64,000 bases of DNA from NCBI GenBank assembly GCA_977016875.1, contig CDRNST010000013.1, positions 1,860,001 through 1,924,000 on the forward strand. Direction: 5' to 3'. Made by a program: the position numbers and the translations under genes. The notes under the pieces were generated by a model that did not search any database, was not told where the DNA came from, and saw only the letters and a list, made by a program, of their open reading frames with translations. This document shows, one piece after another, positions 10,601-47,885 of the stretch (the stretch's first letter is position 1; each line of letters opens with the position of its first letter). This DNA comes from Pavona decussata (taxonomy: Eukaryota).

Positions 10601-13600
10601 CGCTAGATGACCCAGGAAGCGCGGGCAAGAAAAACGGCGGACTTCTTAAACCAACCAGCTGGAAATAAACCACTTTTACTGAATTTCTTTGTTGAGTAGA
10701 TGCTTTGAATCTCAGACTGAAATAGTCTACAACAAAGCGATCCTAACCTGGCTCGTGTTGTTGTTGTGCTGTACGTCGCTCTTATTAAGATGCTATCCAC
10801 AGCAGACAACACTGTCATCACGTTATCTCTGGTCACGCGACTGCCATCCGGGAACCTCAGCCAGTTCTGGTGTGATAGAATACGTTTCAGACACGGTAAA
10901 AGCAATATACAAACCACAAAAGAAGACGAAATTTTTAAAAGTGGAAGGTTGGTTGATGTACCGAAAAACTAAGTGTTTCTTGGTGTTGAGGAAACCATTG
11001 TCGGTTAGGTTTGTTCTGTGGTGTGGGCATTGTTTATTACCTCTTGAGTATTTTGTTTTACGTCATTTAGTGATCGTACCATCCGCAACATCAAGACACC
11101 GCCGAAAATTAGAAAAAATTCAAGAACTATGTCACACCCCAAACTAAACAAAAAATGCAAGGGGTACTGTATTAATACAGGGATCTATTTACAATGATTC
11201 TTCATCCTCACGCTTTAAGGGTCTTTTACGCTGATTTACAGTAATTTCGTTTTAAATCCAAAACAATGGTTTCAGACTGTACAATTACTTTTCTACTAAC
11301 CTCAGATAGTTTAAGGCCGTATAACCCTTTTTTCCCTCCTTGGAGGGGTCTTCCACTACGATACTTGAGAATAAGCCCTCTTCCCTGCAGAGCAAGATTA
11401 AAAATTCAAATATAATCATAATACACAACGTCGTTTTGTAGGTGTGGAGGATGCAGAATGTTATAAGGAATGTATTGTTACTTTTTCCCGTCCAGCCGCT
11501 CATAGTATCTAAAGCAACGTTGAAATCAAAATTCTTCCATGTTGTGTTTGCTTCCAGGAAGCAAAGTTTTACCGTTCGCACACATCTCGATTTTAATGTA
11601 ATGGGACTTGCCTTAAACTACGCTTTTCAAAGTATGCGACAAGATTCAACGGAATGTACCGCTCAATGCTGCTCCTTTAGGATTGAAGCGCACCACTTAA
11701 ATGGCGCGGTACTGAGAGTACTGGCTTGGAATGTAATTTTGGTTGGCAGGTTTGAAACAAAGCTAACAAGGTTGCACTGTTGACTTTTCTTGTGTGTGAT
11801 TTGCGTGTTTAGTGTTACGGCTAGAGCCGAAATTGTAAATGACTGTGGTGCACATCACAAACGTTGGATGGTGCTTTGCTTCAGTTATGAAAATGAAGAA
11901 CATGAAGCCAATTCGTGAAGGCGTTTGAGATATACATTGTAGTTCGTAGCTCTGAGAGTGATCGTAGAAAACGCCTCGCTTCCTTTTACAGTGGTTAGGT
12001 TACGTCTAAGATAAGAGTACAGAAAAGTGGTCATCCAGGCCTTTTGGCAGTTTAAGTACCTTCTTCAATTCAGCAAAATTCCTGAGAACCAGGACGACAA
12101 GTTCGTGTATAACGTCTTGATAACAAGTTTATTAAATATCGTTTGATAATTCTAAGACCAATCTCGAACTGAAACTTAATTTCAGTGGTAAAAGAATCCT
12201 TTTTATCCTCAAGGAACATTAAATGGCCAGATCTTGATTCCTTCATACCACCAACTTGATTTGAAGCAGAGGGCACGTCTCAGATCGATGAAAAAACTAG
12301 CACTTGGTATTAATTTTATGCGGTACATTTTCAAATGGGTTTTTACAAATGGTTCACTTACCATGATTTGCACGTCCGTCTCCCTTGTCATTTCTCCACC
12401 TGGATTCATGTCATGTGACACAGTGTACCGCATGATACCGTCATAGCTCGTAATCTAATAAGGCGACAAAGAAAAAAGGCTGTTCGTTCGGAGATTATCA
12501 ATAAAGTACATGTGGATTAAGGTAAACCAAATAGGCGTCTCCGAGACATTCGAGAGTGTTTATAAATTTTGTATGCTGTTAAGGGTATCAAGGACAATGA
12601 ACTAATAATTTAATGATTCACTTTGCAGACCACTAAATATTCACTAAAGGGTCAATAAGAAGATATTTTCTCAATCTTCGATCAATTTACGTAAAGAAAA
12701 TGACAAGAAATAGGTGCATTAAATGAGCCCTATGGTGGCTATAAATTATGTTATGACTCCTCCTTTTAATGTACATTGCACCCCAAACCAGACAAAAGTC
12801 CGCCAGAAAGTGCATAGTGTGCTCATCCTGGCTTGGAGTCAAGGCAACTGGCTTACAGTTTCCTAATCACAAGGGCCCTTCACTGAGTCATCAATGAGGG
12901 GAAATTTAAGCACACAAGTTAACAAAGCTCGCTGGTAATGTGCAGTGGGTTGAAGTCACACGAAAACTTACCATGTCTCCTCTGAATTCCTCGCCCAAGA
13001 ACCAGTAATACGTTCCAGCGGGTTTCTTGTCAAACTTGTCATAGACAAAATGTTGTGGGTCACCCTGAACCTGCAAGTCGGTGCTAATAATAAAGTCACG
13101 TGACAGATCGGCGAGTCGCAAGAAGTCGGGGCCTTCAAGCAAGGCAAAACGAAGACGAATCTGAAACATAAAATAAAACTTACAACAACAACAACAACTT
13201 ATTTAATATTCATATTTTTATTTTAATTACTGGAATACGCAGTCCGCATATAGCAGAGCTAATGAGTAACTGAATGAGTTACTTGAGAGCCAAGCAGAGA
13301 AAGTCAAGAACTGTCAACCTTAAGAGAGTGGAGAACGTCAGAGAAAGCTAATCACCGTTATTTTGTTGGAACATGGTCAGTATAATCGTGTCACACCTTT
13401 CGTCTCTTCAACAATAATGGTTCATTTTTGTATAAAATACCCTACCAGTTTTGTAAAACTATTAATCAGTGTTTTTACTCAAGTACACTCAATGATAGCC
13501 TGGATAGGAATGGTTTTCGCCTTCCAAAATGTTGACCCAGTTTTAAAGTTTCTCCCTTGCTTCTTCTTGAAAAATAGCTGATTATGGCCAATTCTCCTCA

Positions 13601-16600
13601 GTTTCAGGGAAATAACGTTATGGTTTATCCTGGTGTTGTAGGAGTATTCCGTGTAAGGGAAACTCACCTAGTCTTAACTTTAGCAACGTTTTGACCAAAC
13701 TACGTGGGAATTCCCATGATGTGGCCCTTGACGTTTAATCTTAAGGGGACACCTATGTTTGATATCCGCTCACGGAAGGTTGGATTGTACACAAATGCTG
13801 GGTATTAGAATCAAAAGGTCCTCAGATACCTATAGACCAAACACTTGGCCAATATTGGACAGTTGCGGAGATGGAACCTGTCCATGCCATGGGTTTGTCG
13901 TCGGTGAGTATATAAAGCAAACTACAGACCAAAGATAACCTGGGAACATGGTCAGCTATGTTCATTTATTTAATTAGGCTGAAAGCTCAATCTTGCCTTC
14001 AGCTAGTTAGCGTTCTTCTGTAGTCTGAATATCACTGACAGCTTGGATCGCTTTAAATTACTTTGAAAATGACAGGACCGTCGGCTAAGGGTGACATTTC
14101 TTTCGTTTACTTACTTTGTCTTTGTAGTAATTGGCACATTTACAATGTCTAGATACTCCAAAACAGAAGCACGCAACGCAGCCATCAGGTTCATCTGACT
14201 GCAAGTTGAAGAACGACTGCTTACACTTGTCACACGTCCGACCATCCACGTGTTTCTGTGAAGACGCGAAAACATCACATAAGGATTATTGAACCAACGT
14301 GTTAAATCATAACACGCTGATTATGATTGGCGAAAATTGATCAAAGGTGTTAGATGGGACTTTGGACTCGGCTCATTGCTTAATGTCAGTGCACTCACAA
14401 AGTCAAACTTTGCTTTTTTAAATGTGGTTCAAGTTGCTACATCTTTTTAAAATTTGTCGAAAGAAAACCGGTGTTTTAGGGGAAATCGTTTGAATTGTTT
14501 CAGAGAGCATTAGTTACAGAAACGTAAAAGTCACGACAAGAGGACAATGCGCTACTAGGTCCTGGGGCCCGTTTCTCGAAAGTCCCGGTAATTTCCGGGC
14601 CCGTTAACTTATCGGGCAACTTACCGGTAAACTTTACCGGGCCCGATAATGTGTTTCTCGAAGCACCCGTTAACTTTCCCGGTAATTTCCGGGCCCGGTA
14701 AAATAGGGGATCGTTACCAGGCTCTTGCGCGCGCTACACGCTCGTTCAAAAGAGAAGGAGAACGACTTGGGACTACTCGATGGAAAAGCACGGTTCATGT
14801 ACTAAGGATAGGACTGTCTTCATGATTATCAATTATTGAAGGACAGTGCAATACGTGCTAAGTTTAACTTTCAGTTAGTCGTTTTGTCAAAGGAGAGCAA
14901 CCAAGAGAGATCATTATTTTGCATTATCATGTAATTTGCAAGATATGATCGGTTGCCTTTGGTAGCTCGATTCGACAGTTTCGCTTTTCGCCATCGTACA
15001 TGTATCTATCGTCTGTGAAGTATTTTTTGTATGATGATACTTCACATGGATATGCGAATTGGAGATGCCATGTTTACATTATTTTAGAACGCACCAGTGT
15101 GGGAGGAAGGAAGGTGTATTGATCTGCTGGATTCCGATCTGCTTTTCTCTTTGATGGTCAGTTCGTGGTTGTGCAACAAACATTTGGTGGTGTTAAAGGT
15201 AAGCTTATGTACGTTCAGATAACCATAGCTATCCCTTTTATTGTTTATAAATCAAACATTGTATTTTTGGTTCTTGGTTAGTCAGTTTATTGAAATCCTA
15301 CACATACATCAAACCGGAAATGACTAATTCTAATTACACTCTTAGAAATAAACCATGTCTGAATGATAATGGTGAGCCAATTCCAATTTCTAGATTACAG
15401 ATACTAGGTATGAAGCAACACTTAGTGATTTTACTCTACGTAGCGGAATTTTATTGGATTGCTATAGTCTTTATATGACTAATACATGCTCAGTTGCTCA
15501 ATCGCTAAAAAAAGTAGTCTCTGTTCCTGTGCCTGAACCCTACTGTGAAACCAATGAGTGGCTGTCATGTCTGGATTCAGATTAATGGTATTAATATTCA
15601 ACTTTGATCATAATAATGTTACAAGAATGATAAAGTTGTTATCTTATTATAACTTGATACAGGAAGTCAGTCTGGCAGCTGGTAACACTGCACTGCTGCT
15701 GTTACAATTTACTGGTGATAATAAATATATTTGCACCTGAATAACACTTGGCTGCCAAATTGCTCACTTGAAAATACAAATATTTGTGATTTTTTGTTCA
15801 AAAATAAAACTCATTCCAAAACCAGTCATGCATTATCTTGGAGAGGGCAAAGGGAGGATGCTAGTGATAGCAATTAATATCAGTGGGAGCATAATTGTGG
15901 TCAGTTTATGACTATTTTGCCATACTTCTGGTCAGCCAAGATTAACCTACTGTATTGGATTACAGTCATGACCTTTGGTGATGATCACTGAAATGATGTT
16001 TAGGACAACAACACTTCTAATAGTACTAATAATTTATTGATGATTTAACCTTTTAGGATAAAAAAAAAAATGGACAGGCACAACACCAACTGGGGCAAAC
16101 AAGGAAAAGGCCACCAATTTAGACACTTGCTCAAGCTCAGCTGGTAGTAATATATTCGAACCATACAATAATTGATATTTTCAAAATAATCTAATCACCA
16201 GTACATTCTGTGTGAATATTCATTTTTAATTATTAGTGTCTATTAATAAAAAATGAACAAAAGCTAATGCTGTATTCAAGTGACTAATTATATAATAGGT
16301 TGCAGATCTCAATTTTATGTTCCAGAATTAAGTTATACAATGTAGCCTATCCACTGAGTGTCTCCAATATATTTTAAGTAATTGGTTTATACCCTTAAGG
16401 GGTAGATGCTAAATAAAAATAGTAACAATAATAAATTTTAGCTGCAAGTTTTTCAGGAATCAATATAGGCCGAAAAACATTTAGTGAGTTAATGACATTG
16501 AGTTGGCAGAACTAAGGAACCCTATAGCATTTTGGAACCTTTCCGAAAATGCTACTTATACATAGCTATTAAGATATTGGTCAGGATATATCATCATCAT

Positions 16601-19600: not shown

Positions 19601-22600
19601 ATCAATCGCTCTTGGTAAGTACGCGACCGACAAACCGGGACAAAAATGACCGCCTCCGGCGGCCATCTTGTTTTCTTGCAACAAAATATTGCTTCCCGTA
19701 AACTTTACGGGTACTTTACGGGAGGTCATGACCTCCCGTAAATTACCGGGCAACTTACCGGGCAACTTACCGGGATCGTAAATAACGGGAGTTTCGAGAA
19801 ACACCCGTAAACTTATCGGGGGCTTAACGGGCAACTTACCGGGCCCGATAAGTTACCGGGACTTTCGAGAAACGGGCCCCTGGACTCTAAATTATGGGTT
19901 GTCTGTTTATGTTAATTGCCTTACACAGCACAACTTGGCCAAAACGTGTTTTTTGCCAGCCCTTCTGATTTCTAAAAAAGAAATGACAGAATTTGATCGC
20001 CATTACGGCCCGTTTAATACAGATAAAGACATTAAAACTACATTCATTGGAACTTGTTAAAAGGTAATTGTGACCACATGTAAAGGAGGTAAGGTTTGTA
20101 GTAATATATTTATTGAATCAGTAGCTATCGAATTTTATCTAGTTCTAGAAATTTTAAAATATTTTTAAGTCTTTAGTTAGGGAAATTGTTTTAATACAGG
20201 GTTAACCTCACGATTACCCTATATAGGATGTTTTTGTATTTGTGTTGAAGCCTCCTGAATAAAATGTTATGTTATGTTAATAAGGCTGAGCAATTATCGA
20301 GGCTTCAGGAACCGATCGCTTTATAGAACGTGAGCGTTTGATTGAGTTTGACCACTTGATACCGGTTGGAACGTTTGCCGTGATGTTATCAAGGGTGGTG
20401 ACTAACCATCAGTTATGTAGACAGTGATCCTAAAACTATTCGTGGACAAGTTCCAATAAATGTAATTGCGTCTGTAGACAAAGTGCCAGGGTGTGGCTAC
20501 TCCAATTAAAGTTACCGAGAGACACCTCACTGAGGTGATGTGCANNNNNNNNNNNNNNNNNNNNNNNNNNNNNNNNNNNNNNNNNNNNNNNNNNNNNNNN
20601 NNNNNNNNNNNNNNNNNNNNNNNNNNNNNNNNNNNNNNNNNNNNNNNNNNNNNNNNNNNNNNNNNNNNNNNNNNNNNNNNNNNNNNNNNNNNNNNNNNNN
20701 NNNNNNNNNNNNNNNNNNNNNGGAAACTCCACAAAAAGCAGAGAAGGAGGTAAAAATAACATGCTTATCCTGAGTTTTTGCCCCTGTTTCCATTTCATGT
20801 TCTGGACATGTACGCCTCTTTAATCCATCCGGATGTTTTCAAGTTTGGCTTTTTTCATCCTAATGATAGAGTCGTCCTTTTAATTTATCTACTAAACAAC
20901 TCTGCAAATGTGAATCTTAAAAGGTCAAGAGGCGTACATCCGCATCGCTTACATGTGCACGCGATCACGCAAAAGCGTATAAGCAAACTATGATATGAAA
21001 GGATGATGAATATTTGTTTTAAAAGAGAGAAGAGCCAAAATAGCTTCTCGCGTTCGCTCGGAAAGGAAACGACTGCTACACAGGCTAGCATAAAAGAAAA
21101 TCGCCGTTTGAATTCTTAAACACTGCTCATGTGTGCAAGAAATCATACTGTGCTAATTTTATGGCAATAAAATAATAAGATAAGACAATTTTAATGATAC
21201 AATAATATGATTTTATGTTAATATCAATGAAAAAGAACGTCGAAACGGTCACTCTTAAGAATTTCATCGAGACTCAAAAATTCGAACTACTCTGTAGGGC
21301 ACAATAAACAGGGCTGCAGGATATTACTGTCCAAGAGCCTTTATTGAAGGTTAACACAGAGTCCACAGACTCACAATTTAAAATCACACTACATGACTGA
21401 TGGCTGGACGCTCTAAAGCCATTGCGTGACCGGAGCTTTACAGGGTCACGACATACTTCTTTCGAGTGCCTACAAGACAGCAAGTCACGCTACCGCTGTC
21501 TGCAAGCCGCAGGCCAATACAACTGATTCATTCCAACATAGTACTGAACGTCTGTCTACTTTGACTCTAAAATTATGTACTTGTCTTCTGGGTTTGTTGT
21601 TCTGTAAAACATGCTGCTAAGAAAGGACCAGAAAGATTCGCTGGTCTTAAGGTGGTCATTAACCTTTTATAAAGACCTTTTAAAATAATTCCGGAGACAT
21701 CACGTATGAGTATCAGACCCTATCAGTTCCGGTTTATTTTTCACACTCCTGGGTTACAAACTAAACAACAAATTAGTTTTCCTTTGGGGGTCCTTTCCTT
21801 TCTGCTCTTGTAACTACATGTAAATAATATTATTTCTGAGGGTCACTGATTTCCTTTGTGTATTGCTCATTGAAAGGGTGGATGGAGTAACGATCATTCA
21901 AAGAGGCACAAGCCGGTGATTTGGGCAAAATGCGGCCCTGTATTACCGCCAATAAGAACCGGAACAGTTATTTCACTACTTTTTTTGATTTACTTCTCAT
22001 GTTAAAAGACAAAGATTGTACTTGGAAATAAACACGGAGATATTCACTCTTGAAACAGGTAAAAATCTTGAAAGCGATCTATCTTTTGAGAAGATTTCCT
22101 TTCAAAATTGTCTGATTCCTGGTTTGCTGCACGAATGCTTGGGTAGCGAGCTATTGTAGATTTTCTTCTACTACTTACGAAAAAGAGCTTGCTGAATTCA
22201 GTACAAAAGTATATCGACATTAAAAGTCTCAATTAAAACTGTCCTTTTGATGAAGTGCTAATCTAGAAAACCAGATGGGGTCTGCCTTATTTCACTTCAC
22301 TTTATCTTCGTCAAGTTTATTATTGCTGTCCTTGGCCGTTGCTTTAACTGTTTGTGAATGTACAGTGTGAATGTTTTAGTACGCTTTGCTTGTATGGTGA
22401 ATTAAGTCCGTACTTAATATATTCCAAGGCTTTCCTTCTACACCTCAGAAACCACCAGCTTTTTCTTTAATTATTCAACTATTTCAATGCATTGACACAA
22501 CTTGTCACAAACGACTCAACAAATGATACTGAGCTTAAAATGTGTCGGTTGGTTAGATCAGGTCATATCACATAAGCAGATTTATATCTTGGACTATACT

Positions 22601-27541: not shown

Positions 27542-30500
27542 CTCGCGGATCGGTCATTAAGTCTTGGTCGTTTTGTCAATCTTAGTTCAGATTTTTCAGC
27601 TCACTTCAAAACTTAAAAGCATTTCTTTCAAAGAAGAACATCCTTCAACTTGAAAGAACAAAATACACGGCGCACAAGATCGCCTCAAGAAACCGGTTTT
27701 TGTTGCAACTGTTACTGTCTTTTCTTCGAGAGGTACAAGAACAGAAGAATAGCTTTCCAATTCAAACTTCCGGCAAAGTGTTCAATCTTTACATATATTT
27801 TGCATAACTAGAATTCGTCAGGGAGAAGATAATCTTCAATTGTCCAAGCTTAAACTGATTTCAATCTGCTAAAGAACCTTAAATGCAACTGTTGTTAGGT
27901 TTACAAGTGCGTTTTTCAATAAAAATGTATTTGGGGGCGTTCCAAAGCTGGAAACTAAGAAAAGTCAATTTGTCTTCTTTGTTCACCTGTTTGGTGGTGA
28001 CGTCATAGGGCAAGGGCACGCCTTACAGTCTGAAGATTTCCCAATCGTGGCGTTTCCATAGAAACCGGTCAGACACTTCTCGCATCGTAAACCTTCAGTA
28101 TTGTGTTTACAATTCTGATGAAACAAACGGAAAAGAAAAAAGAAATCAGTCTATTGACGAGACCTAACTTTTAAAGAACGAGGAAGAAAATGTTATAATG
28201 AGCGTAACCACTGACCTTGCATCTTCCAGTCTTAGGATCACAGCCAAAATCTGAATGGCCGTGACATTCACACTTGATACACGCGCCAACACGTGACCGA
28301 TAGTAACCCTGTTTGCATGACTGCCAAGACAAAGAGATTGAATTATTGACAGAATAGGTTTTTAGGCATCCGGCGACCAGAACCGTGGTGGGTGGGAGAA
28401 GTGAAAAGTTTGTAAGATTTCTAAACGGAATTCTTTTCGATGGGCTCACATGGTCATTTACCATTCGGGCTGTCTAATCATACTTCTTCTCAAAATTGTT
28501 GTCTTCTGATAAACACTGATTGGTTGGAACACACATCTCCGTGTGGACATATTCAGTTTTCTTTTCACAAGAATATAATGGTACAGTCTCAGCCGTTGTG
28601 TGCATGAGGAAATGATCCCGCGCTATTCCCGGAACTAAGATAGCAGCAGCAATCGAGACTTACTTAAAAATTTCTTGTTTTCGATTACGATATTCCGCCA
28701 ATTAAAACTGCACTCAGCTTCGTGCTAGGGGTTTAATTTACATAAAGAAATTCAGTGTGGCTTGGGACGGTTCAACGGTTAAGTTAAAAGGTAATGGGGC
28801 CAATTACAAAAAGTGTAGATTGTTTTCAGCAAATCCAGATATTACTAGGAAGCGCTTTTGGAAACTTGTATCAGTTAAAGGACCAGACACTCGCGTGCAC
28901 GAAATTTCACCACTCCCCAAGAACTTAAGAATTCGTTTACAATTAGGAATAGACACGCTGAAATTGTGTAACGAAAAGCTACCGTTTGTATGTTTATTGA
29001 TAGTTACCTCGCAAGACAAACCGCTGTGTCCATCTGGGCAGTTACACCGTTCAACTAACAAAGTCTTTCCAAACCCTGCGTCTTTCTCACTAGTCACATC
29101 AAGGGAGAGGTCTTTGATGCTTTATAATCAAAAAAGGAATTTAGTCATGTTCCTAAGAATACCGGGCTACAATTTTATAAACACCGAGGCCCTGTTCACT
29201 TAGGGTGCGGAATAGGAATACATACAATGATGGCAAGAAACCGCTCATAAGAAATTGTACGATTTATTGGAGTACAAAATCGCTATTAAATTATCATGCG
29301 TAAGTCAAAGTTTGCACAAAGAGCCATCCCGCTTATTCTTAATCCGGAATACGATCAATCGACTCAAAGTGGTATTTTTACTAGATAAAGGAAACATTCA
29401 AATTTCAAACTGTCATATCATTTCTGGGTCTAAATTCCTCTCAGCCATAACATTTGTGCAGAACTGAGGCATAAGAAGCAAGAGAGAGTCTACTACGGTC
29501 CATTTGATTATAACTGAAATCGTACCTCATTGACTTAGGACCTGATTCATCGCCACTGTACGGGACCCTTACATAGATGGCCTGAACGTCCGATAACACC
29601 CTCATGAAAGTGTCCCTGGAAGTTCGTGCTCCATCGGCTAAACGCCATTTTGCCTAAGGGATAATAAAAACCACAAAAAAAGTCACTACATTTTGGCTTT
29701 CAAAAGGGTTTGGTTTAGGCTGTAGAAAGGAACTGCCTCATATTTTTATAAATCAGACCGATTTTCGTCTCCTCACTCATTTTCTTTGTCAAATTGGGCC
29801 ATATCGGCCCGATTAATCGTAAGGGTAAATTAACCTTCAACTTTTCAGAATCAAAAATCCATTTCTAGTACACAAATTTTCGATTCCAACAAGGAATCAT
29901 TTTAGGTCAATGGTTTTTCCTTCGAGCCGGCAGATACGAGCTTCCAATGACAGCCTTACCTGTCACATGACTTTCAAACTCCGTCTCTTGAAAAAGATTC
30001 GGTGCGTGATGGAATCGAAAGACTGTGAACTACACTGAAGGGGCAACTCAATTCGAATTTGATCAACATAACAGGATCAAGTGATTAAATCTCTACCCGT
30101 AAATTTCAATTTCTCAGGATCCCACCGGTGCAAAAGAAAAAAAGAGAGAAAAATTTTTATTAGCTTGGAGAACTATTGACAAACTGGTTGGTCCACACTA
30201 TAAGTAAATAGGACGTAAAATCATGTAATGGAAAATTCTCGATCGGCTTTCATTTAACGCAATTTACTTCGATAAGGTTACTGTGAACCTTCAAGGACGC
30301 CTTTCGAAAAATCTTTCCAACGCGATTTATTTTGAAAAGAATCCTAAAAACGCCTAAAATTGACAGCGTCTGTGAAACTGAATAAACAGCTCTTGCGTTA
30401 ATGCTTACATAAACAAACTGGGCCATAGCGTTTACTCAGGGGATAAAAGGCAGGAGATAATAGAATGCTTTCCATAAGAAACTGAGTAAAACGTGATATA

Positions 30501-33500
30501 TTGAAATCCGTGTTTCTCACTGCTGGGAACTAGGTCATTTTTAAATTTGAACATTAAAGTACCGATGTTCTAAAGTCTTCTTTGATAAAGACTCGGCAAG
30601 CGGGCTCTACTTGATTACAGTAAGTTTCTCTTCTCGCTTTAAATACTGCCCCAAGAGCTCGTTCTTGAATTCGTTAAAGTTTTCGCATGTCAGATGATTT
30701 GCAAAAGTGCCACACAGTATCACAATAGGTTAAGTGAGGTGGGTAGGATGACGGATTGCTTTGTTTTTACTATTCAACGCATTTACCACTGTTCAAATAT
30801 GCTCATTTTTCATTCAATATTCGTTGTCTGTGTACAACAGATACTCTGGGATATACGAAATTTCGTGTGTCATGGAGAAGAACGTAACCAATTAAGACCT
30901 TCTCCAGCTTTCTGCAAAAAACTGTGCTGTGTTATCAATAGGTTGAATAATAAGACAGTTATCCATTTCAATCTTGCGGAATATCGCCTGATTTTAGCCA
31001 ACCTCGTCCGCTGAGTATCAGGCGATATTCGGTGCGATTTCGCAGGATAATTGTTAAATGATGGCCAAAACGCAGACTGGCTGTTGTACAAACCTCAGTG
31101 AGAATGATCTCCATTGTTGTGTAAGAATTCCCACTGCTCGGCTGCGCTTCGTGATGATAAACCAAAGTGGCGTCTTTCCCCTAAGTGGCAAACTTTGTTA
31201 ATATAAGTGGGATGGAAGGCGAAATGGCTTTTTAAAACTCTTTAAGTCCTAATATGGATGTGGATATGGACATGGATGTTCTTCTCACTGTTTTCCTTAT
31301 GTATTGTCTGCTATGAGTAGCGAGAGTTTGTTGAAATATCAACTCTTTTTATCTTTGATGTTCATTTGCTTTATTCTGAGTTCAAAGAGTTTGCGTTTTT
31401 GAGATTGAGTGACTAGAACAAACCTTCAAGAATTAAAAGGTGAATTTGGTAACACATACCACCAGTCGAACGGCCTCTGTAACTTGACTCGTCGGAGTGA
31501 ATGGTGGCTCTGTGACTTGAGCTGATATTGGCGTTGTTAGGTCTAAAAACGGAACAAAGGAAAAATATGTGAAGTCCTATTCTAGTAATCACGTTCTATA
31601 GTTACCGCAGGTTTAATGTATTGCTCAGTTTACCAAAATATGAATTTTGTCAGAAGAATAAAGCTGGAAGGTTGACATTTTTTAAGTTCCCCCTTACAAT
31701 ACTTTTTCCGAGGTTAGGATCCTCCACTAATATATTTTTTGTCTTTCTGTGTTTTTAATTTCGATAAACAGAAAGGGACTAACGCAGTTATAGGGAAAGT
31801 GTTGATAGCAAAATATGCACAAGTTCACGGTAAAAAATATAAACATAACATAAAACAATGAATTTTTATATACTATTGAAATTTACTTCTCAGTGTTCTT
31901 TAGGCTCAGACATAGTATAAAGGATTAGTTTTTTGTAAACAGTACAGTCCGTAAAGAGCGACTGCTTACAAAAAACATTGACGCTAACCTGACGTGGGAG
32001 TTATTGCTTTCAAAGTTGAAGCTGAAGAAGATTTAACAGTGGTAGTTTCATCTTCAACGAAGGTTGTCGCATCTGTAGCTTTGGAAGATGAAACTACTGA
32101 CGCTGTTGTTGCTGGTGTGTCAGTGCTGAAGGATAGAACAAGCGCAGCGATAGTTCTTTCATCTTGGCTTTCTGTCTTTGAATCCGTTGCTGTGGATGGT
32201 ATCTCTGGTATTGCTGTGGATTTCTCCGTTGTTTGTCTGTCAGTACTGTAAACTGAAGAGGACATAACAGTGGTTGATTCTTTGGGTAAAACATCTGTCA
32301 GAACTGAAGGCGTAAACGGCGTTGTTGTAGTGGTCGTTTCATCACGAGAAAGGGTTGTAGCTTCCGTCACCTCTACTGTTATCGTTGTCACTGTTTCCGA
32401 AGTAACTTTTTGAATATCGTCGGGTGACGGAGACATAAAAGTGGTTGTTATATCTTCAGTGGTAGTCGATGTCTCCGTAACTGGCGTTGCAGATGTTTCC
32501 GTAGCTGGTCTTCCAGTACTGTATACTGTGGAGGGTACAACTGTGGTTTTTTGAACTTGATCCTTAGTCGACAAATCTGCTACTAAGGAAGGCGTTTCAG
32601 GTATTGCTGTTGTTTCAACTTTTGCCTCAGTCGACACATCTGCAATGGAAGGCGTTTCAGGTATTGCTCTAGTTTGAACTTGTTCCTCAGTTGACACATC
32701 TCCAGCTGCGGAAGATGTTTCTGGTGCTGCTGTAGTTTGAACATGTTCCTCAGTCGACACATCCGCTGCTGTAGAAGGCGTTTCAGGTACTGCTGTTGTT
32801 TCAAGATGTTCCCCAGTCAACACATCCGCTGTTATGGAAGATGTCTCTGGTGTTGCTGTTGTTTGAACTTGTTCCTCAGTCAACACATCCACTGCTGTGG
32901 AAGATGTTTCTGGAGCTGCCGTTGTTTTAATTTGTTCCTTAGTCGACACATCCGCTGCTGTAGAAGATATTTCTGGTATTGCTGTTGTTTGAACTTGTTC
33001 CTCAGTCAACACATTCTCACCTGTGGAAGATGTTACTGGTGTTGCTGTTGTTTCAACTTGTTCAACTTGTTCCTCAGTTGACACATCCACTACTGTAAAA
33101 GATGTTTCTGGTGCTGCTGTTGTGTGAACTTGTTCCTCAGTCAACACATCCGCTGCTGTGGAAGGCGTTTCAGGTAGTGCTGTAGTTTCAACTTGCTCCT
33201 CAGTCAACACATCCGCTGCTGTGGAAGATAGTTCTGCTGCTGGAGTAGTTTGAACTTGTTCCTCAGTCGACACATCCGCTGCTGTGGAAGATGTTTCTAG
33301 TGCTGCTGTCGTTTCAATTTGTTCCACAGTAGCCACCTCCCCAGCTGTGAAAGGCGTTTCAAGTACTGCTGTAGTTTGCGCTTGTTCCTCAGTCGACACA
33401 TCTGCTGCTGTGGAAGATGTTTCGGGTGTTGTTGTTGTTGTTTCAACTTGTTCTTCAGTCGACACATCCACTGCTGTGGAAGATGTTTCTGGTGGTGCTC

Positions 33501-36500
33501 TTGTTTGAACTTGTTCCTCAGTCGACACATCCGCTGGTGTGGAAGGCGTTTCAGGTGCTTCTGTTGTATCAAGTTGTTCCTTAGTCAACACATCCGCTGC
33601 TGTGGAAGATGTTTCTGGTGTTGCTGTTGTTTCAATTTGATTCTCAGCAGACACATCCCCAGCTGTGGAAGACGTTTCCGGTATTGCTGTTGTTTGAACG
33701 TGTTCCTCAGTCGACACATCCACTGCTGTGGAAGATGTTTCAGGTGTTGCTGTTGTTTCAAATTGTTCCTTAGTAGGGACATCGGCTGCTGTGGAAGACG
33801 TTTCTGGTGCTGCTGTTGTTTGAACTTGTTCCTCAATCGACACATCCGCTGCTGTGGAAGATGTCTCTAGTGCTGCTGTTTTTTCAGTTTGTTCCACAGT
33901 AGACACACCCGCAGCTGTGGGAGATGTTTCAGGTATTGCTGTTGTTTCATGTTGTTCTTCAGTCGACACATCTACTGCTGTGGAAGATGTTTCTGGTGTT
34001 GCTGTTGTTTCAATTTGTTTCTCAGTAGACACATCCCCAGCTGTGGACGACGTTTCAGGTATTGCTGTTGTTTGAACGTGTTCCTCAGTCGAGACATCCG
34101 CTGCTGTGGAAGGTGTTTCTGGTGTTGATGTTCTTTCAATTTGTTTCTCAGCAGACACATCCCCAGCTGTGGAAGACGTTTTTTCTGGTATTGCTGTTGT
34201 TTCATCTTGTTCTTCAGTCGACACATCCACTGCTGTGGAAGATGTTTCAGGTGTTGCTGTTGTTTCAAATTGTTCCTTAGTAGGGACATCGGCTGCTGTG
34301 AAAGACGTTTCTGGTGCTGCTGTTGTTTGAAATTGTTCCACAGTCGACACATCCGCTGCTGTGGAAGATGTTTCTGGTGCTGCTGTTTTTTCAGTTTGTT
34401 CCACAGTAGACACACCTGCAGCTGTGGGAGATGTTTCAGGTATTGCTGTTGTTTCATGTTGTTCTTCAGTCGACACATCCACTGTTGTGGAAGATGTTTC
34501 AGGCGTTGCTGATGTTTTAAATTGTTCCTTAGTAGAGACATCCGCTGCTGTGGAAGATATTTCTGCTGCTGCTGCTGTAGCTTGAACTTGTTCCTCAGTC
34601 GACACAGCCGCTGCTGTGGAAGATGTTTCTCTTGCTGCTGTTTTTTCAGTTTGTTCCACAGTAGACACCTCCCCAGCTGTGGAAGGCGTTTCAGGTACTG
34701 CTGTAGTTTGCGCTTGTTCCTCAGTTGACACATCCGCTGCTGTGGAAGATGTTTCTGGTGTTGTTGTTGTTGTTGTTTGAACATGTTCTTCAGTCGACAC
34801 ATCCCCAGCTGTGGAAGTCGTTTCAGGTATTGCTGTTGTTTCATCTTGTTCTTCAGTCGACACATCCACTGTTGTGGAAGATGTTACAGGTGTTGCTGTT
34901 GTTTCAATTTGTTCCTCAGGAGACACATCCGCTGCTGTGGAAGACGATTCTGGTGCTGCTGTTGTTTGAACTTGTTCCTCAGTCGACACACCCGCAGCTG
35001 TGGAAGATGTTTGAGGTATTGCTGTTGTTTCATCTTGGTCCTCAGTCGACACATCCGCTGCTGTGGAAGATGTTTCAGGTGTTGCTGTTGTTTCAACTTT
35101 TTCCTTAGTAGAGACATCCGCTGCTGGAGAAGTTGTTTCTGGTACTGCTGTTGTTTGAACTTGTTCCTCAGTCGGCACATCCACTGTTGTGGGAGATGTT
35201 GCCAGTGCTGCTGTTCTTTCAGCTTTCTCAGTCGACACATCCGCTACTGAGGAAGATGCTTTTGGTGCTTTTGTTGTTTGAACTTTTTCTTCAGTCGACA
35301 CATCCGCAACTGTGGAAGATGTTTTTGGTGTTGCTGTTGTTTTAATTTGTTCCTCAGTCGACACACCCGCTGGTGTGGAAGATGTTTCTGGTGTTGCTGT
35401 TGTTTTAATCTGTTCCTCAGTCCACACACCCGCTGGTGTGGAAGATGTTTCTGGTGTTGCTATTGTTTTAATTTGTTCCTCAGTCGACACATCCGCTGCT
35501 GTGGAAGATGTTTCAGGTATTGCTGTTGTTTCAACTTTTTCCTTAGTAGAGACATCCGTTGCTGGGGAAGTTGTTTCTGGTACTGCTGTTGTTTGAACTT
35601 GTTCCTCAGTCAACACATCCACTGTTGTGGGAGATGTTGCCGGTGCTGCTGTTGTTTCAGCTTTCTCAGTCGACACATCCGCTACTGAGGAAGATGCTTT
35701 TGGTGCTTTTGTTGTTTGAACTTGTTTTTCAGTCGACACATCCGCAGCTGTGGAAGATGTTTCTAGTGCTGCTGTTTTTTCAGTTTGTTCCACAGTAGAC
35801 ACCTCCCCAGCTGTGGAAGGCATTTCAGGTACTGCTGTAGTTTGCGCTTGTTCCTCAGTCGACACATCCGCTGCTGTGGAAGATGTTTCGGGTGTTGTTG
35901 TTGTTGTTTGAACTTGTTCTTCAGTCGACACATCCCCAGCTGTGAAAGTCGTTTCAGGTATTACTGTTGTTTCATCTTGTTCTTCAGTCGACACATCCAC
36001 TGTTGTGGAATATGTTTCAGGTATTGCTGTTGTTTCATCTTGTTCTTCAGTCGACACATCCATTGTTGTGGAAGATGTTTCAGGTGTTGCTGTTTTTTCA
36101 AATTGTTCCTTAGTAGAGACATCCGCTGCTGTGGAAGATGTTTCTGGTAACGCTGATGTTTCAATTTGTTCCTCCGTAGACACATCCCCAGCTGTGGAAG
36201 TCGTTTCAGGTATTGCTGTTGTTTCATCTTGTTCTTCAGTCGACACATCTACTGTTGTGGAAGATGTTACAGGTGTTGCTGTTGTTTCAATTTGTTTTTC
36301 AGTAGACACATCCCCAGCTGTGGAAAACGTTTTAGGTATTGCTGTTGTTTCATCTTGTTCTTCAGTCGACACATCCACTGTTGTGGAAGATGTTTCAGGT
36401 GTTGCTGTTGTTTCAAAATTTTCCTTAGTAGAGACATCTCTAGCTGTGGAAGTCGTTTCAGGTATTACTTTTGTTTTATTTTGTTCTTCAGTCGATACAT

Positions 36501-39500
36501 CCGCTGGTGCGGAAGATGTTTCTGGTGTTGCTGTTGTTTTAATTTGTTCCTCAGTCGACACACCCGCTGCTGTGGAAGATGTTTCTGGTGTTACTGTTGT
36601 TTTAAATTGTTGCTCAGTCGACACATCCGCTGGTGTGGAAGATGTTTCAGGTAGTGCTGTTGTTTTAACTTGTTGCTCAGTCGACACATCCGCAGCTGGG
36701 GAAGGGATTTCAGGTGTTTCTGTTGTTTCAAGTTGTTCCTCAGTTGAAACATCCACTGCTGTGGCAGATGGTTCTGATGGTGCTGTTGTGTAGACTGAGG
36801 TTGGCGAAAAGGTGGTTGTTTGATCTTGTTCCCCAGTCACCAAAGCCTCCATTTTTGTGATTGTAGCATCTGGTGTAACTGTCAGTGTTTTGAAGGTAGC
36901 TTTTTCAAACCTGTAAGGTGAAAGAGTCTCTGCGGTGGTTTTAGTCTTTTTTTCAATGACACTGATTGTTGTCAATGGAGTAGTTTCATTTGGATCTATG
37001 GTAGTCAGTCCAGATCCATCATTTGCCTGCTCGTCATCGTTACTATCAATGAAGTAGTCTGTTTCAAAGCCCCTAGACAATAAAATATCTCTTGGCACTC
37101 GAGCATGTCTTGATTCATTTCCTGGATCATTTTCCGTCAATGCATCTCCATCAGAGTACTTGATGGAGTAACGAAGTTTTCCACCATAACTGGTTAGCTA
37201 CGAAGAGCAAAAGAAACAAAAAAATAAGTTTAAACGCGTTGCGTAGTTTATTTATAGTGATAGTTAAGACAGATTTTCTCTCATCATATACAAACACTTT
37301 CTCCTAAGATCAGAACCATATGTTTTTGTACGAGTTAATCAAAGGCTAAAAGCTTCCAAGCTTGTAAATAACGCTTCTGCAGACAGCATGCACGCATTAT
37401 TTGGCTATGTCTACGCTATATCTTTGGCCAGCACAGCTCTTTACGCTACGCCTGCTAATGAACTTAGCGGTTCACATTACGCTTGGCATGGCATCTGATA
37501 AACACGAAAAAAGTGTTATACTTGCTAAATGATGCAGTAGTTCCCTGGTAGCAGAGTCCCTTCTTCATTAATTTTATCCCGGTCAAAAATAACACAAAAG
37601 GAATACCACACTGGGGACGTGACGCAACGTTCGGGCATAAATATCGTAAATAAATTCACAGTTTCTTCTGCACTTGAGACTATAAAAAAAATCCGCAATG
37701 TCTCTGGAACAGAAAAGTTAAAACTACTTGCACCCAGATCTCTAAAACGTATTCAAACAGGTCATCAAAAAATCGAATATTACAAACTGTTGATTATCTT
37801 GCAATCTCCCCATTCATTAATAAGCTAAATTTGCTCAGCTACCTATTAAGCATATTTTATTAATTTAAATTTATATATTAAACTCCTGTTCGCTTGTGCA
37901 CGCTGTCAACTATTACTTTAATAGGTGCTGCTGCATAAAATGTAATCGTGTTCTCTCTCTCTTTTTATTGATGTTTGACTCTCCCCCCCCCGCCTCGACA
38001 AGTCCTCTTCCAGTTGAAGGTACCCGTATTTTACCTTTGGAAATATCAATAAATGTCTTGTTGTTTGTCCTACCCAACAAAGTTTTCATAACTATTGCTA
38101 AGCAAGAGATCCTTGTACTTGCCTTTTTTCCTAAAAACCCCTTCGGTAGAGCAAAGTAAAGCGGTGTTTCTTTAGACACGTTGTGAGCCACTAACTCATT
38201 GTTCGTTTGGTCAACAGCGTATTTAACTCCAGAGACTTTATCTCCACTGACATCTACTAAGTACACGACTGGATCATGGGGCGACGTTTTGAGCTCTAGT
38301 TTGAGCTGTGATAAATATGTAATTAAGAAAGAAAAAGATATGTTAGATTAAAGATACCAAAGCTAAAAAAGACCTGAGTGGTGTAATAAATGGATAATGG
38401 CCAAAGAGGAGTCCCTTCTCCAGGTTGTACCTTACAATACGACGATGGAATATTAAAGGTTGGCTACCTAAGATTGGCATTATTAAAATTTCATATACGT
38501 TGCCGATAAGGGACACTAGTTCCAAACAAGTGGCAAGAAAGTCTGCATCTACTCCTTCCACATCCTTAAACCGAGAAAGAAGGTTGACCTTTCGTTTACC
38601 ACACAAGGAATATTTGGGTTAAAAGAACCAGAAAAAATCTACGTCTTGCTTCTGACATTTATTTTGAATATAGCTTTGGAAAATCTCCTGCGCGATATTT
38701 TGATACCAGCTTGAACTAAGTAAAACAAAGTTAAGGAATTCGGACCAAGTCAAATATAATTTGTAAAACTGTTGTTCAATGACATCGAATAAGTAAAGTT
38801 ATAATCGAACTTCACCGATCGCGCATGCGTTCAAATTACACAATGTTCTCCACTCACCCTGTCTCGGTACACGTTGGCATGACTGCAATTGTGTGAACGC
38901 CCCGTGCAAAAACACGACACACACTTCCCATGAGAGGCAGAAGTTTGCTCTCCTGGACCACAGAATCCATCTTAAAAGAGAAGGAAACTTTTGATTATGG
39001 ACTTGGCAATGAAGGCCTCGTTGTGTCTTTTGAAAACAAAAATACGTTTTACGTTTTGTCCACAAATGAGACACCGATTACGTATTGATTAAGTTTTGTG
39101 TCTGGCCGCCAGTGCGCCTCTCCGGTATCAACAAAGCGAACGTTTTCTAATCATTTGTACCAAGCATAGTTTGAACAGTTAACCAAATTGAACAGCTTGC
39201 TGTATATAAAGTCCCTTATGGATTTACCTTCGCTAGAAAGCCATTTAGTATACATTATTTAGATTCGATGTATATAAAGTCCCTTATGGATTTACCTTCG
39301 CTAGAAAGCCATTTAGTATATATTATTTAGATTAGATGTGGTGTGAACATAGCTTAAGTTTTAAACTGATGAGACAGAAAATGAACTCGTAACGTAGCAT
39401 GACTTACCACATCCAATCTCATCGCTCCAGTCTCCACAGTCATTTTCTCCGTCACAGCGCCATTCCTGTCTTGCACACGTCCCATTCTTGCAACGAAATC

Positions 39501-42500
39501 TACTGTCGTCACATGACTCCTGTGCGGCTGCAACTTAGTAACGTTATGCACACGTTAACAGTTTTGCATGAGAGAAAGAATTACTGCAAATGCAAGAATA
39601 CAGGTTTGATAAATCTCACACTCACTTACGTTTTATAATGTCGAGAAAGAAAACTGGTCATTTAATAATAGATGAATTTGTCGGTCAGTGATGCATATAT
39701 ATTTTCTTTTACCGAGTATGTTTGTGTTACTGACTGAAAAAAAAAATCTTGAATTTATCTCAAATATAGCCATTTTAGTGAAGAAAAAACTATTTACGTT
39801 TTCACTGCTGTTTTCTGCCACGAAAAAGAATAATTAACCTTCTAATTTGCCGGGGTTTACATTGATTATGCGACACTAATTTGAAAAGCAACTATCGCCG
39901 AATAGTTACCTGATTCGAGAGGCGAACATTTCCCCTCCACACGACACTTCTGAGCAAGTCTTTGAATTACCATCTCTGGAACACTGCAGTAGTAAATATA
40001 AAACTCGTCTATGAATCCGTTTACTTTCAGCGCTAACGCCTCGTTTATTGAATATTTACCAATGGTGGTCAACTCGCCCCATGCTATATCCAGCGACCCT
40101 CCGTTTGACGAACCCCTCAATGTTTCCACTCCATTAAGAAATACCGCGGAACGCCCAGTATGAGCGTCATATTGGACGACGAGGTGTGTCCAGAGGTTTT
40201 CTGGAATGATTGGTGATGCGCTTAGCAGCTCGAATGTAGCGAGTGATGGGCGGGTTCCAGTGTATCGCCATGCGATGTGTCCTTCGAAAAGCTCAAAGCG
40301 GAGTGCACCCGCCTCTCCTTGTAAAACAAGAATCGGCTGAATGCCGTATCTGGATTGCAGTTTGACCCAAACGGCAATGGTTATTGCACTGGTTACCGTT
40401 TGACGAGTTGCACTCTTGAATTGCACATCTCCTGCATTCAGGTCTGCATAGTTGCCACATGGATAATCTTCGCTGCTCAACGACGGGGAATGGGCACGGC
40501 GTCTGTGCAATTCCTGCTGGTCAAATCCAAGGTGCAATTCGGGTGTACAACAGCCTGTCAAAAAACAAACCAGCATCTATGACAGATGACCATCACGCTG
40601 GACATGGATTATGGGGCGATGTACATGGAATGACAGAGGCGTGAACTAAGGTACTCGCTAAGATTATCAGGCCGGATATGACTGACAGATCCTTCGAGGG
40701 TCGTATCTAAATTACCTATTTTAAAACAATGGGGTTGAAATTCACTAGATAAACGGCGATTTGTTATCATGTGTGTGCAGCTGAATTGGACAAAACTTAA
40801 AAGAAACGAGTCCCTCTGCCTTTTTTGGAAAGAGGGGTGGCGAAAAACGTATTGGAGCTATATGTGTGTCCTTGAAGAGTATCAATTTTCAGCCATTTAG
40901 GGTTAAGATAGTCATTTTTTTGCCATTTTGGCTTACATTGAAAGGTTTTTTGAGGTGACATCTGAGACAATGGTATATGGACAACGATTCTGGTTTGGTT
41001 TGGTTAGTCAGTTTCCGCGTTTGGGCGTGGTACACCCCAAAACCTAAAATGGTGTGGGGGTATGCTCCTCCCTTCAAACGTAACTTTAAATGACCTGTGG
41101 AAAGACAAAACTGAGGAACCTGAATGAAGTCTCTCCCAATCGCTTACCTAGTTTGTCTGAGAAACAGTGCAATCAAACTTAGACTTATCCAAACGGATAG
41201 TTGAGGAAAAAGCTACACACGAGCCATCAGTGAAATGTGAAATTAGTGAAAATACGTGAAACGCAAGCCGTCTTTTGCGTGGTGATTCTTTTTCTCTGTT
41301 TGTTGTCAGGTTTAGCCTGTTGCTATGTCTCTTTTCTTCCAGTTAGAAAAAGCAGGTTTGACTCAATACAAGAGAAATATAACTTTTGATGCTAAAAAAA
41401 GGTAAACATACACATTCGCGGCGATGGTCTCCCTCAACTGGATCTACCATTCTCAACAGGTCCTTTAAATTGTCTTGTTCTCGTATTTTTTTGCATCAAA
41501 CGTGGACTGGGCAGAGGGAAAAAAATGAAACTGTGCTATTTTCCTCTCGCACCATTTTTCCTATTGTTTACCAGTTTTTTCTCTGTTTAGCTCCGGTGGA
41601 AAGAAGAGAAAATTCCTACACGGCAGCGAAATTGAACCTTGCGAAGGTAAACTGGGGCCCCTTGTGTCAGTTATGAACATGTACATAATTCCGTTCACAG
41701 CAAAACCATGACTGCAGACAAGTGAGAGTAAACGGTATCTATACCTGATCACTACAAACTGATCCTCACGACAGAGGAAAGACAGATGCAGAGGAATAAA
41801 CTAATATAACAATTAACACATTTTATTCGAAATATCGGGCACAAAAAATATCATAATTTTCATTTTATTTTGTTCCTCTTGCGTCCGCTTTTCATCTGCC
41901 GTTGGGATCAGTTCTCAATCCCAGCCTGGTTTGTTGTTTTGACCTTCGCTGCATGAAGATGAAAGAACAGGCGCAATAAGAATAGCGCGTGCGCGGAACG
42001 GGGTGGGGTGTGATCATGTAGTCTATCGTTCAAGCCAATTTTGCGATATATCCCCCAATTGCTGCCTGCATGCCTGGCAGGTGCTCTCTCCTCCACGACA
42101 CGCCAACAAAAGTAATTGGAAGAACTCCTATATTGAGAATAAACCCATCCATCCTCCAACCAATGGTTTTCAATACATAGCTACCCTTATGGCCGATGAA
42201 CGAAGCGAGTTGCGGGGGGGGGGGGGGGGGGGGAAGGGGGACGAATTTCTCTGTTACAAGAAAAACTCCCGCGACATCGTGGAAAGTAGCCTGCGATTTC
42301 CGACCTTCGTAGGTACAGATTGTAGTTTTTTCCTATCCATTTCCGTCTCCTAAACAAGAGAGCTGGTTTCTACCTTTCTGTTGCGCTATAAATCCTTTAA
42401 AATTCTTCGCATTTCACCTGACTTTTCTTCGGGCTTTGCGGTTAAATCTCCCGCTGTTTTGGCTCATTTTCCAGTGATAATAAAATCAAGTACTTTGGAC

Positions 42501-46569: not shown

Positions 46570-47885
46570 TAATTTAATAATAAACCTAATTTATATTGCA
46601 CTAAAATCATAAAATATTCTAAAGCGCTTTACAGCACATAATTAAAATCAATATAACGAAGCGGACTAATGTGAAAATTATCACAACAAACTATATGCTG
46701 ACTTAAAAAGGTATGTCTTTAACTTTGATTTTAAAATAGAAACCAGTTGGGAATGGATCGTATATCGAAGGAGTTTGTTCCAAAGTAATGGTCGAGAATG
46801 CGCAAAGGCCCGATCACCAAAGGTCTTGTGAATAGTTTTCGGCACAAAAAGAAGTCCCTGGTCACAACAGAGTAGGCTATACGCTGAAATGGAATGGGGT
46901 AACAGCAGTTCTTTAATGTATTGTGGAGCTTGATCGTTAACAGTTTTATAGACTAAAAGCAGGAGTTTAAACTGAACACGATAATTAACTGGAAGCCAAT
47001 GTAGGCGGAATAAGGCAGACGAGATGTGATCAAATTTAGGTATACCAAAAATTAGTCGAGCAGCTGCGTTTAGCACTTTCTGAAGATATTTGATATTTAG
47101 GGATGCCAAAGAAAAGGGAGTTGCAGTAGTCGTAATGTGAAGTTACTAATGCATGAACAATAATTTTCGTCCACTCAGGATTGAGGAATTTTCTAATTTG
47201 GCGGATTTTATACAACCCAGCGAAGGCCTTCATGGCTACATGTCTTGGCAACGTGAATCGACATGGACATGTTAGAATCGAACCAGGAACCCAAATTACG
47301 AACACTGTGGAGAGGCTGAACGGTAGAGTCACCGACAAAGATGGAATGAATTGATATTTTTGATAGTTGTTGACGAGAACCAACTATTAGAATTTCAGTT
47401 TTCGAATCATTTATCATCAGGCGATTATGAAGTAGCCACGCACGGACATCAGAAACACAGGACTCAATAGCAGCTAAGACAAGGTCTTTTGAAGAACCGC
47501 TATCGGGTCTGAACGAGAGATAGAGCTGCCTGTCATCAGCATACCCATGATCATGAGCTGAGGGAAGGAGGTTAGCAATTACGTGATAGAGTCGGGAGAC
47601 GTATAATACGAACAAAACAGGACCCATACAGCCGCCTTGTGGGACACCGCAATGTAATTGAAATTCACCAGAAAAACTATCATTTATGAGAACCCGTTGC
47701 TTTCTGTTCGCCAGATAACATGCGAACCAGGTAAGGGCTGAACCAATGATTCGAAAATCATTTTCAAGTACACTAAGGAGAATTTGATGATCAATTGTGT
47801 CAAAAGCCGCGCTCAAATCGAGTTACACAAGAGGCGTAATTTCCTGATTGTCCATAGACATGAGAATATCACTTTTACTTGTTTA
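46570..47885 (-). mobile_element. 5'-truncated non-LTR retrotransposon (L2/CR1 group), decayed reverse transcriptase
   Basis: LDLSAAFDTIDH, GVPQG, YADD, LHWLPV, FGDRAF motifs spread over three frames with stops and frameshifts; short 3' UTR ending in an ATT-rich tail. Confidence 0.92.

Follow-up and report, generated by a model that had tools for sequence, protein, structure and literature searches.

The window analysed here, 64,000 nucleotides (nt) of the coral Pavona decussata (contig CDRNST010000013.1, positions 1,860,001 to 1,924,000), contains on its minus strand a multi-exon gene of the perlecan type. Its modules follow the order N-terminal LamG_3, one LDLa, laminin-EGF and laminin-IV (L4) domains with two L4 copies, an array of immunoglobulin (Ig) domains and, about 20 kb further on, probable LamG modules. 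The coding sequence of the first L4 domain (L4-1) is split, and between its two halves lies a single in-frame exon of 5,209 nt, which continues from an L4 strand into a very long mucin-like sequence. Such an array inside a perlecan-like gene had been predicted from the sequence, and this arrangement was confirmed. The positions of all features are summarized in Table 1.

The assignment to perlecan is based on several features. The LDLa module lies near the N-terminus, laminin-EGF and L4 alternate, with EGF_laminin exons between and after the L4 domains, and the window contains at least four Ig exons. Two L4 domains were seen rather than three. Two Laminin_G_2 matches on the same strand are, by strand and position, candidates for domain V. 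For the N-terminal LamG_3 exon, several public assemblies contain clear counterparts that likewise consist of one exon; it is therefore a conserved trait of this type of perlecan and not something peculiar to this locus. Apart from these, the database matches were mostly bacterial LamG_3 proteins, and the long matches that were inspected were bacterial and were rejected as orthologues. No SEA module, as is typical of domain I, was found among the exon fragments scanned, and the N-terminal exon encodes LamG_3. Judged by its domain content, the gene is a perlecan of the cnidarian type without domain I and not the full five-domain form. The other Laminin_B loci of the genome resemble laminin chains.

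Table 1. Features of the perlecan-type gene in the window, its putative continuation on the contig, and the contigs of the relatives
Feature	Position	Strand	Basis or remark
N-terminal LamG_3 exon, upstream of LDLa	39869-40576	-	Counterparts in public assemblies, 33-59% identity
LDLa (Ldl_recept_a)	39364-39534	-	Pfam, 42.1 bits; one module here
L4-1 first exon, 61 codons, ends ...LPKGFLGKK	38123..38305	-	Sequence and frame; phase 0 to 0
Large exon: L4 core strand, then mucin-like insert	31989..37197	-	1,736 codons + 1 nt
Non-repetitive head of large exon: L4 strand and ~70 residues alignable between taxa	36790..37197	-	Alignment; tblastn of head to L005, L003, L008
Candidate glycosaminoglycan site G-S-G, residues 61-63, acidic context	37009..37017	-	Sole Ser-Gly in large exon
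Tandem array, 67 x 63 nt (21-residue unit)	32546..36789	-	Tandem Repeats Finder
Thr/Ser-rich non-repetitive tail of large exon	31989..32545	-	Weakly similar to L005 insert
83-nt exon: last insert residues and L4 strand ...EAVRLV	31460..31542	-	Phase 1 to 0; donor GTATGT after AVRLV
L4-1 exon, 29 codons, starts GKDATLVY, ends ...IILTE	31094..31180	-	Phase 0
L4-1 exon AKWRLADG...FMRVL	29526..29653	-	Phase 2 at end; Laminin_B positions 76-110
L4-1 end and start of next laminin-EGF (...IKDLSLDV...)	29008..29119	-	Phase 0 at end; 56-58% identity to L005, L003
Comparison exon of compact second L4, 93 nt, ITSYDG...DVQIM	12362..12454	-	Donor GTAAGT; Laminin_B positions 14-44
Ig array: four I-set/Ig_3 exons	4231-771	-	Pfam; array runs off window
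Laminin_G_2 matches	C13:1838787-1839155, 1840312-1840665	Same as gene	~20 kb beyond window
L005	Tara Pacific scaffold, ERZ28656722		LamG exon 54% identical to window
L002/L003	ERZ25071792, 2.5-Mb contig		LamG exon 46% identical to window
L008/L012/L014/L015	Three ENA assemblies		LamG exon 33% identical to window

An AG acceptor with its pyrimidine tract (...cttcgtag) precedes the large exon, which ends with the donor G/GTTAGC (the slash marks the splice site). It opens with the L4 core motif, the SYGG strand, and its translation contains no stop. An exon opening with the L4 core and running through acidic repeats rich in Thr, Ser, Glu, Ala and Pro without a frameshift had been predicted, and this was borne out. 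The array has a period of 63 nt with 67.1 copies and 78% matches. The product of the whole exon contains 24.5% Thr, 12.0% Ser, 13.1% Glu, 11.4% Ala and 6.2% Pro (Ser and Thr together 36.5%), it is free of Cys, and its net charge is -242. This low-complexity composition, high in Ser and Thr together with Pro and devoid of Cys, is that of the proline-, threonine- and serine-rich (PTS) domains of mucins, and a further feature of these, tandem repeats within one large exon, is also present. A Pfam scan of the exon revealed no family beyond its first 21 residues, which match Laminin_B positions 13-28. The VWD-C8-TIL units and the C-terminal cystine knot of gel-forming mucins were not found in the exon, and its flanks are L4, laminin-EGF and Ig domains; by this domain content its product is not a gel-forming mucin.

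It might be argued that the array lies outside perlecan, as a nested single-exon mucin gene, a non-coding intronic satellite or an artefact of the assembly. Gene callers on public contigs indeed turned the corresponding big open reading frames (ORFs) into separate genes, even on the wrong strand, and a run of 177 N is present elsewhere in the perlecan gene (20545-20721). However, an L4 strand follows directly after the acceptor, the first Met occurs only at about residue 117, and the exon has neither a signal peptide nor a start codon of its own. In addition, the phase left by its donor is completed by the next exon, stops have accumulated in every other frame, and the same layout recurs in independent assemblies. 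The repeat copies are not collapsed identical units. In the 602-Mb genome the 63-nt repeat is confined to this locus, and blocks of the array that are 80-90% identical form a higher-order structure, which argues against a dispersed element, a candidate that was rejected, as well as against a collapsed assembly. We regard a position of the array outside perlecan as very improbable.

A repeat unit that is divisible by three can stay open by inheritance alone, and for this reason all reading frames of the large exon were compared. The coding frame is free of stops, whereas 41 and 156 were counted in the remaining sense frames and 76, 35 and 31 in the antisense frames. The consensus of the repeat is free of stops in four of the five non-coding frames. 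An array of 67 consensus units was also mutated in a simulation at 12.8%, which is the observed divergence of the units from their consensus. On average 17 in-frame stops arose, the minimum was six, and none of the 2,000 runs remained free of stops. Taken together, the stops in all other frames and the simulation show that the reading frame of the large exon is kept open by selection.

The open frame also bears on the possibility that the exon is real but is usually skipped or spliced internally, as a cassette exon or exitron. The mucin form would then be minor and tissue-specific, and the common isoform would have a compact or a defective L4. The large exon and the following 83-nt exon together comprise 5,292 nt, which is divisible by three, so that skipping both would preserve the frame. 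The ratio of nonsynonymous to synonymous differences (pN/pS) among in-register repeat units is 0.81, and all three codon positions are equally variable; such weak constraint would suit a part-time exon. In mucin-type repeats, composition and length usually matter and the sequence is little constrained. Regular skipping, however, would remove the SYGG strand, and with 80-100% identity across four taxa no other part of the L4 is as conserved. Furthermore, frames that are open across 5.2 kb here and across 1,260-1,690 codons elsewhere indicate that the exon is translated often enough for selection to act. Regular skipping is thus quite unlikely in our estimation.

The exons on both sides of the insert were scanned for Laminin_B one by one. 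The first exon of L4-1 has a GC donor (AAG/GCAAGT; 38121-38123) instead of GT, and the orthologous exon on the contig L005 apparently has an ordinary GT. The orthologous exons end with ...FLGNK (L005), ...FLGKR (L003) and ...YGGNK (L008). The large exon starts in phase 0 and ends in phase 1, and after it the 83-nt exon and three further exons finish the first L4. The frame is restored, with GKDATLVY at 31180..31094 and WRLADG...FMRVL at 29653..29526, and thus the L4 sequence resumes after the 83-nt exon exactly as had been predicted. The match of Laminin_B positions 76-110 to the latter exon reached 25.3 bits, compared with a cut-off of 22.4. In the second L4, Laminin_B positions 14-44 and 72-116 match, and the equivalent of the large exon plus the 83-nt exon is, again as predicted, a single exon of 93 nt (12454..12362, DVQIM/GTAAGT). 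With about 1,745 residues in the insert and about 15 in the equivalent loop, the factor of expansion, proposed as more than 50-fold, is nearer to 100-fold.

As a proxy for the fold, a paralogous L4 that is encoded in one exon (L011, from a laminin-type gene on contig C18) was modelled together with 15 coral homologues. The mean predicted local distance difference test (pLDDT) score was 55, and the values were 70-79 for residues 50-100, i.e., around the site of the insert. In the model a strand after SYG (residues 49-57) is followed by a loop of 12 residues (58-69) and the strand VILEG (70-74). The best structural matches were region 3 of human perlecan, in crystal structures from 2025 (9i5a/9i5b), and the L4b domain of laminin alpha-2 (4yeq), with modest template modelling (TM) scores of 0.35-0.45. 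In a sequence alignment, the loop at the insert site has about 14 residues in the L4 of human perlecan (PDB 9i5a). No match was obtained when individual short exons were searched against the PDB sequences. A location of the insert in the hairpin loop between the strand that follows SYGG and the strand before G-K/R-D/G is supported by the model, but not proven. The ends of a hairpin loop are neighbours, so that the L4 sandwich could still close around such an insert.

An orthologue comparison had been suggested together with the original prediction, and it revealed that the split is not restricted to Pavona decussata. Relatives were found by using the LamG_3 exon as an anchor and then walking along public contigs (assemblies ERZ25071792, ERZ28656722, ERZ25072724, ERZ25073842 and ERZ26695794). 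One GC-rich contig with LamG_3 and LDLa (L009) was dropped, because it stops before any L4. In three other taxa, which are probably anthozoans, the first L4 is split at the identical intron position and in the identical phase (L005; L002/L003; L008/L012/L014/L015). A homologue search with the head of the large exon (residues 1-150 and 1-60) gave no match, but this has little weight, since the search covered only proteins between 955 and 3,040 residues long and a full-length model would exceed that size.

On L005, the SYGG strand leads into a single open exon of some 1,260 codons. It is rich in Thr and Ser, and no tandem repeats were found in it. The L4 resumes with a small exon (16281-16355, ...TEAVRIM), followed by GRDGSVILYH and the rest of the domain. 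In the L002/L003 taxon, about 450 Ser/Thr-rich codons follow the SYGG strand and then an exon similar to TILa/VWC. Here the L4 resumes with the exon 13784-13864 of L003 (...EDVRLV), and GKDATLLFY follows.

The most distant taxon (L008/L012/L014/L015) has the order LamG_3, two LDLa, Ig, laminin-EGF and L4. Its SYGG exon has a Thr/Ser/Pro tail of 110 residues and ends with a GTGAGT donor in phase 1. On L012, L014 and L015, about 23 kb separate the two parts of the L4, and all intervening exons are on one strand. These comprise at least seven ShK exons, six of which were scanned and all six were at or above the Pfam cut-off, as well as Thr/Ser-rich linker exons, a TILa-like exon and an exon of 1,692 open codons. 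The latter (L015:7198-12273, minus strand) contains 44 copies of a 90-nt unit (30 residues) with 93% matches. It has 47 N-x-S/T sequons, and may carry N-glycans as well as O-glycans. It ends with a strand of its own, YFELL/GTGAGT, the next exon opens with GKGPTVVY, and the rest of the L4 and laminin-EGF domains follow. Position and phase of this intron are the same as in AVRLV/GKDATLVY of the window and DVQIM/GRGL of the second L4. A DIIIAGRG stretch of this taxon had been considered as a displaced second strand, and was rejected, since the giant exon ends with YFELL at the conserved intron. In public gene calls for this taxon, antisense ORFs were placed across the repeat array of L015/L014 (L014:18201-20219).

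The ShK and TILa exons are located at L012:10844-20483, L014:11530-15668 and L003:12798-13439. The TILa/VWC-like exon is common to two taxa, and a weak remnant is present at 15904-16020 of L005. In Pavona decussata the intron between the large exon and the 83-nt exon has only 447 nt, which leaves no room for ShK or TILa exons. The inserts of the taxa are unrelated in sequence and also differ in module content, and their lengths span about 450 to at least 2,500 residues. According to this comparison, the split of L4-1 is old and its site is fixed, and only the 21-residue array is lineage-specific. By the same comparison of repeat units, the tandem arrays arose independently at least twice.

The comparison also bears on the possibility that the first L4 is no longer one folded domain, and that its halves are relics and the insert a long linker between the LamG_3/LDLa head and the remainder of the protein. 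Thousands of residues with folded modules such as ShK and TILa inside a sandwich of 150 residues would indeed be unusual. However, both halves retain Laminin_B matches, one of them above the Pfam cut-off. The sequences of the halves and the intron phase are moreover conserved in four taxa, although the LamG exons are only 33-54% identical, and relics would have decayed. A loss of the L4 fold is therefore unlikely.

Composition is shared among the inserts. Ser and Thr together account for 26-38% in all four large exons, and Cys is absent save for one residue in L005, which probably lies past the donor of that exon. The first approximately 70 residues of the insert can be aligned across three taxa. 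Within this segment, each exon contains a unique Ser-Gly in acidic context at residues 61-67, in shared alignment columns: DGSGL in the window, DASGTED on L005 and GGSGME on L003. An acidic Ser-Gly fits the general pattern of glycosaminoglycan (GAG) attachment sites, which reflects the preferences of xylosyltransferase. The conserved acidic Ser-Gly near the head of the insert may thus take a GAG chain.

Both giant arrays are also rich in the motif S-x-E, which is of the Golgi casein-kinase type. In comparison with composition-shuffled sequences, 43 motifs were observed in the array of the window versus 27 expected, and 43 in the array of L015 versus 18 expected. S-T-E is present in both unrelated repeat units (window 32546-36789; L015 7469-11424). 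With one motif per unit, the excess may be chance multiplied by repetition.

The reading that we favour, with a probability of roughly 0.7, is that the first L4 of this coral perlecan orthologue is intact and that a mucin-like loop of the O-glycosylation type, fixed in position and free in sequence, projects from it. The insert of about 1,745 residues, Cys-free, rich in Thr, Ser, Glu, Ala and Pro and stemming almost wholly from one 5.2-kb exon, would lie within the hairpin loop of L4-1. The L4 sandwich would close, and the insert would project from it as one long disordered loop, predicted to be densely O-glycosylated like a PTS domain of a mucin. In this way it could supply the hydrated, space-filling and charge-bearing part that bilaterian perlecan has in domain I. 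Selection would act on composition and length and not on sequence, and each lineage would gain and replace its arrays on its own.

Several observations weigh against this reading or narrow it. The amino-acid sequence of the repeat units is barely constrained, as seen from the pN/pS ratio. That the large exon is included in the mature mRNA is inferred from the selection on its frame, and the ShK and TILa exons of the relatives are placed in the perlecan mRNA by position and strand. The assignment to the loop depends on a proxy model of low confidence. The GAG attachment leans on one Ser-Gly, and the Ser is missing in the most distant taxon. The net charge of the large exons is -242 here, but -49, +11 and -28 in the other taxa. 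A strongly polyanionic backbone, as had been proposed, is by this comparison a feature of this coral only, and what the taxa have in common is the richness in Ser, Thr and Pro.

A more far-reaching version regards L4-1 of cnidarian perlecan as a platform that has accepted insertions since ancient times. Its loop would have borne the glycan part of the protein since before the anthozoan lineages split, and a brush with a conserved GAG site at its base would replace domain I. It would have been remodelled by tandem expansion, with units of 21 residues here and 30 residues elsewhere, and by the capture of modules (ShK, TILa/VWC). In a calcifying coral, the very acidic version rich in S-x-E might in addition bind calcium or be phosphorylated. 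We put this version forward tentatively, as a possibility that is more doubtful than the projecting loop itself.

The perlecan of Nematostella has been described with domains II-V, with neither SEA nor O-glycosylation sites upstream of domain II, and an insert in L4 is not mentioned (PMC4398486). A study of the Nematostella matrisome from 2025 mentions a mucin-like insertion only for a collagen XVIII-like protein, and in its supplementary file 2 perlecan is divided among three adjacent gene models (NV2.14904, NV2.14905 and NV2.14907), one of them without a Swiss-Prot hit (PMC12549020). The Nematostella locus may thus be fragmented by a similar insert. The literature on perlecan in connection with mucin, corals or skeletal proteomes yielded no description of a split L4, and the hits to coral skeletomes were entries in reference lists only. 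Together with the original prediction, the question had been raised whether the insert is already standard in described cnidarian perlecans. It recurs in genomes, whereas a published description was not found. The new result is the presence of the insert in other genomes as well; no earlier description of a split L4 with a giant, variable insert was found.

The gene shares with human perlecan/HSPG2 (9i5a/9i5b) and Nematostella perl the order of LDLa, laminin-EGF/L4 and Ig, probably followed by LamG, as well as the L4 core, and with the latter also the lack of SEA and domain I. In contrast to human perlecan, with its L4 loop of about 14 residues, it contains the giant insert, a LamG_3 N-terminus, a single LDLa and two L4 domains as far as seen. 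The insert resembles the PTS domains of mucins in its richness in Thr, Ser and Pro, the lack of Cys, the repeats in a large exon and the fast-evolving units with retained composition. Unlike these, it would lie in a loop within a folded domain of a basement-membrane protein, neither VWD/C8/TIL and cystine-knot modules nor SEA and transmembrane regions flank it, and its Glu content of 13% is unusually high. Long segments of the O-glycosylation type are likewise present in other conserved matrix proteins, namely alpha-dystroglycan, agrin and the collagen XVIII-like protein of Nematostella, and the last example illustrates that cnidarian matrix genes do acquire mucin-like inserts (PMC12549020). 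In these proteins, however, the segment lies between domains or breaks the collagen helix, while here it would split a beta-sandwich between neighbouring strands. Domain I of perlecan is a possible functional counterpart, given the acidic Ser-Gly and the hydrated, charged region that the insert would provide. It differs in position and by its SEA module, and it has three SGD sites instead of the one candidate Ser-Gly.

Perlecan is among the few matrix proteins that nearly all animals share, and its GAG-bearing domain I is missing in cnidarians (PMC4398486), for which the insert is a concrete candidate for the location of the glycans. It would also be an extreme case of natural domain insertion, in which a single loop of a small beta-sandwich accommodates thousands of residues and even folded modules. 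The insert explains why gene callers break the locus, making the big exons into genes of their own or placing them on the opposite strand, and studies of matrisomes and skeleton proteomes may therefore miscount perlecan. Protein databases that draw on such gene calls should be used with caution, as the antisense ORFs called across a repeat array illustrate.

Two further observations were made within the window. The run of 177 N at 20545-20721 is situated in an intron of the perlecan gene, between its two L4 domains. The minus strand of 46684-47822 contains open frames whose translation includes a motif resembling reverse transcriptase (LDLSAAFDTIDH...). They probably represent a retroelement situated within the 5' end of the perlecan gene or close to it.

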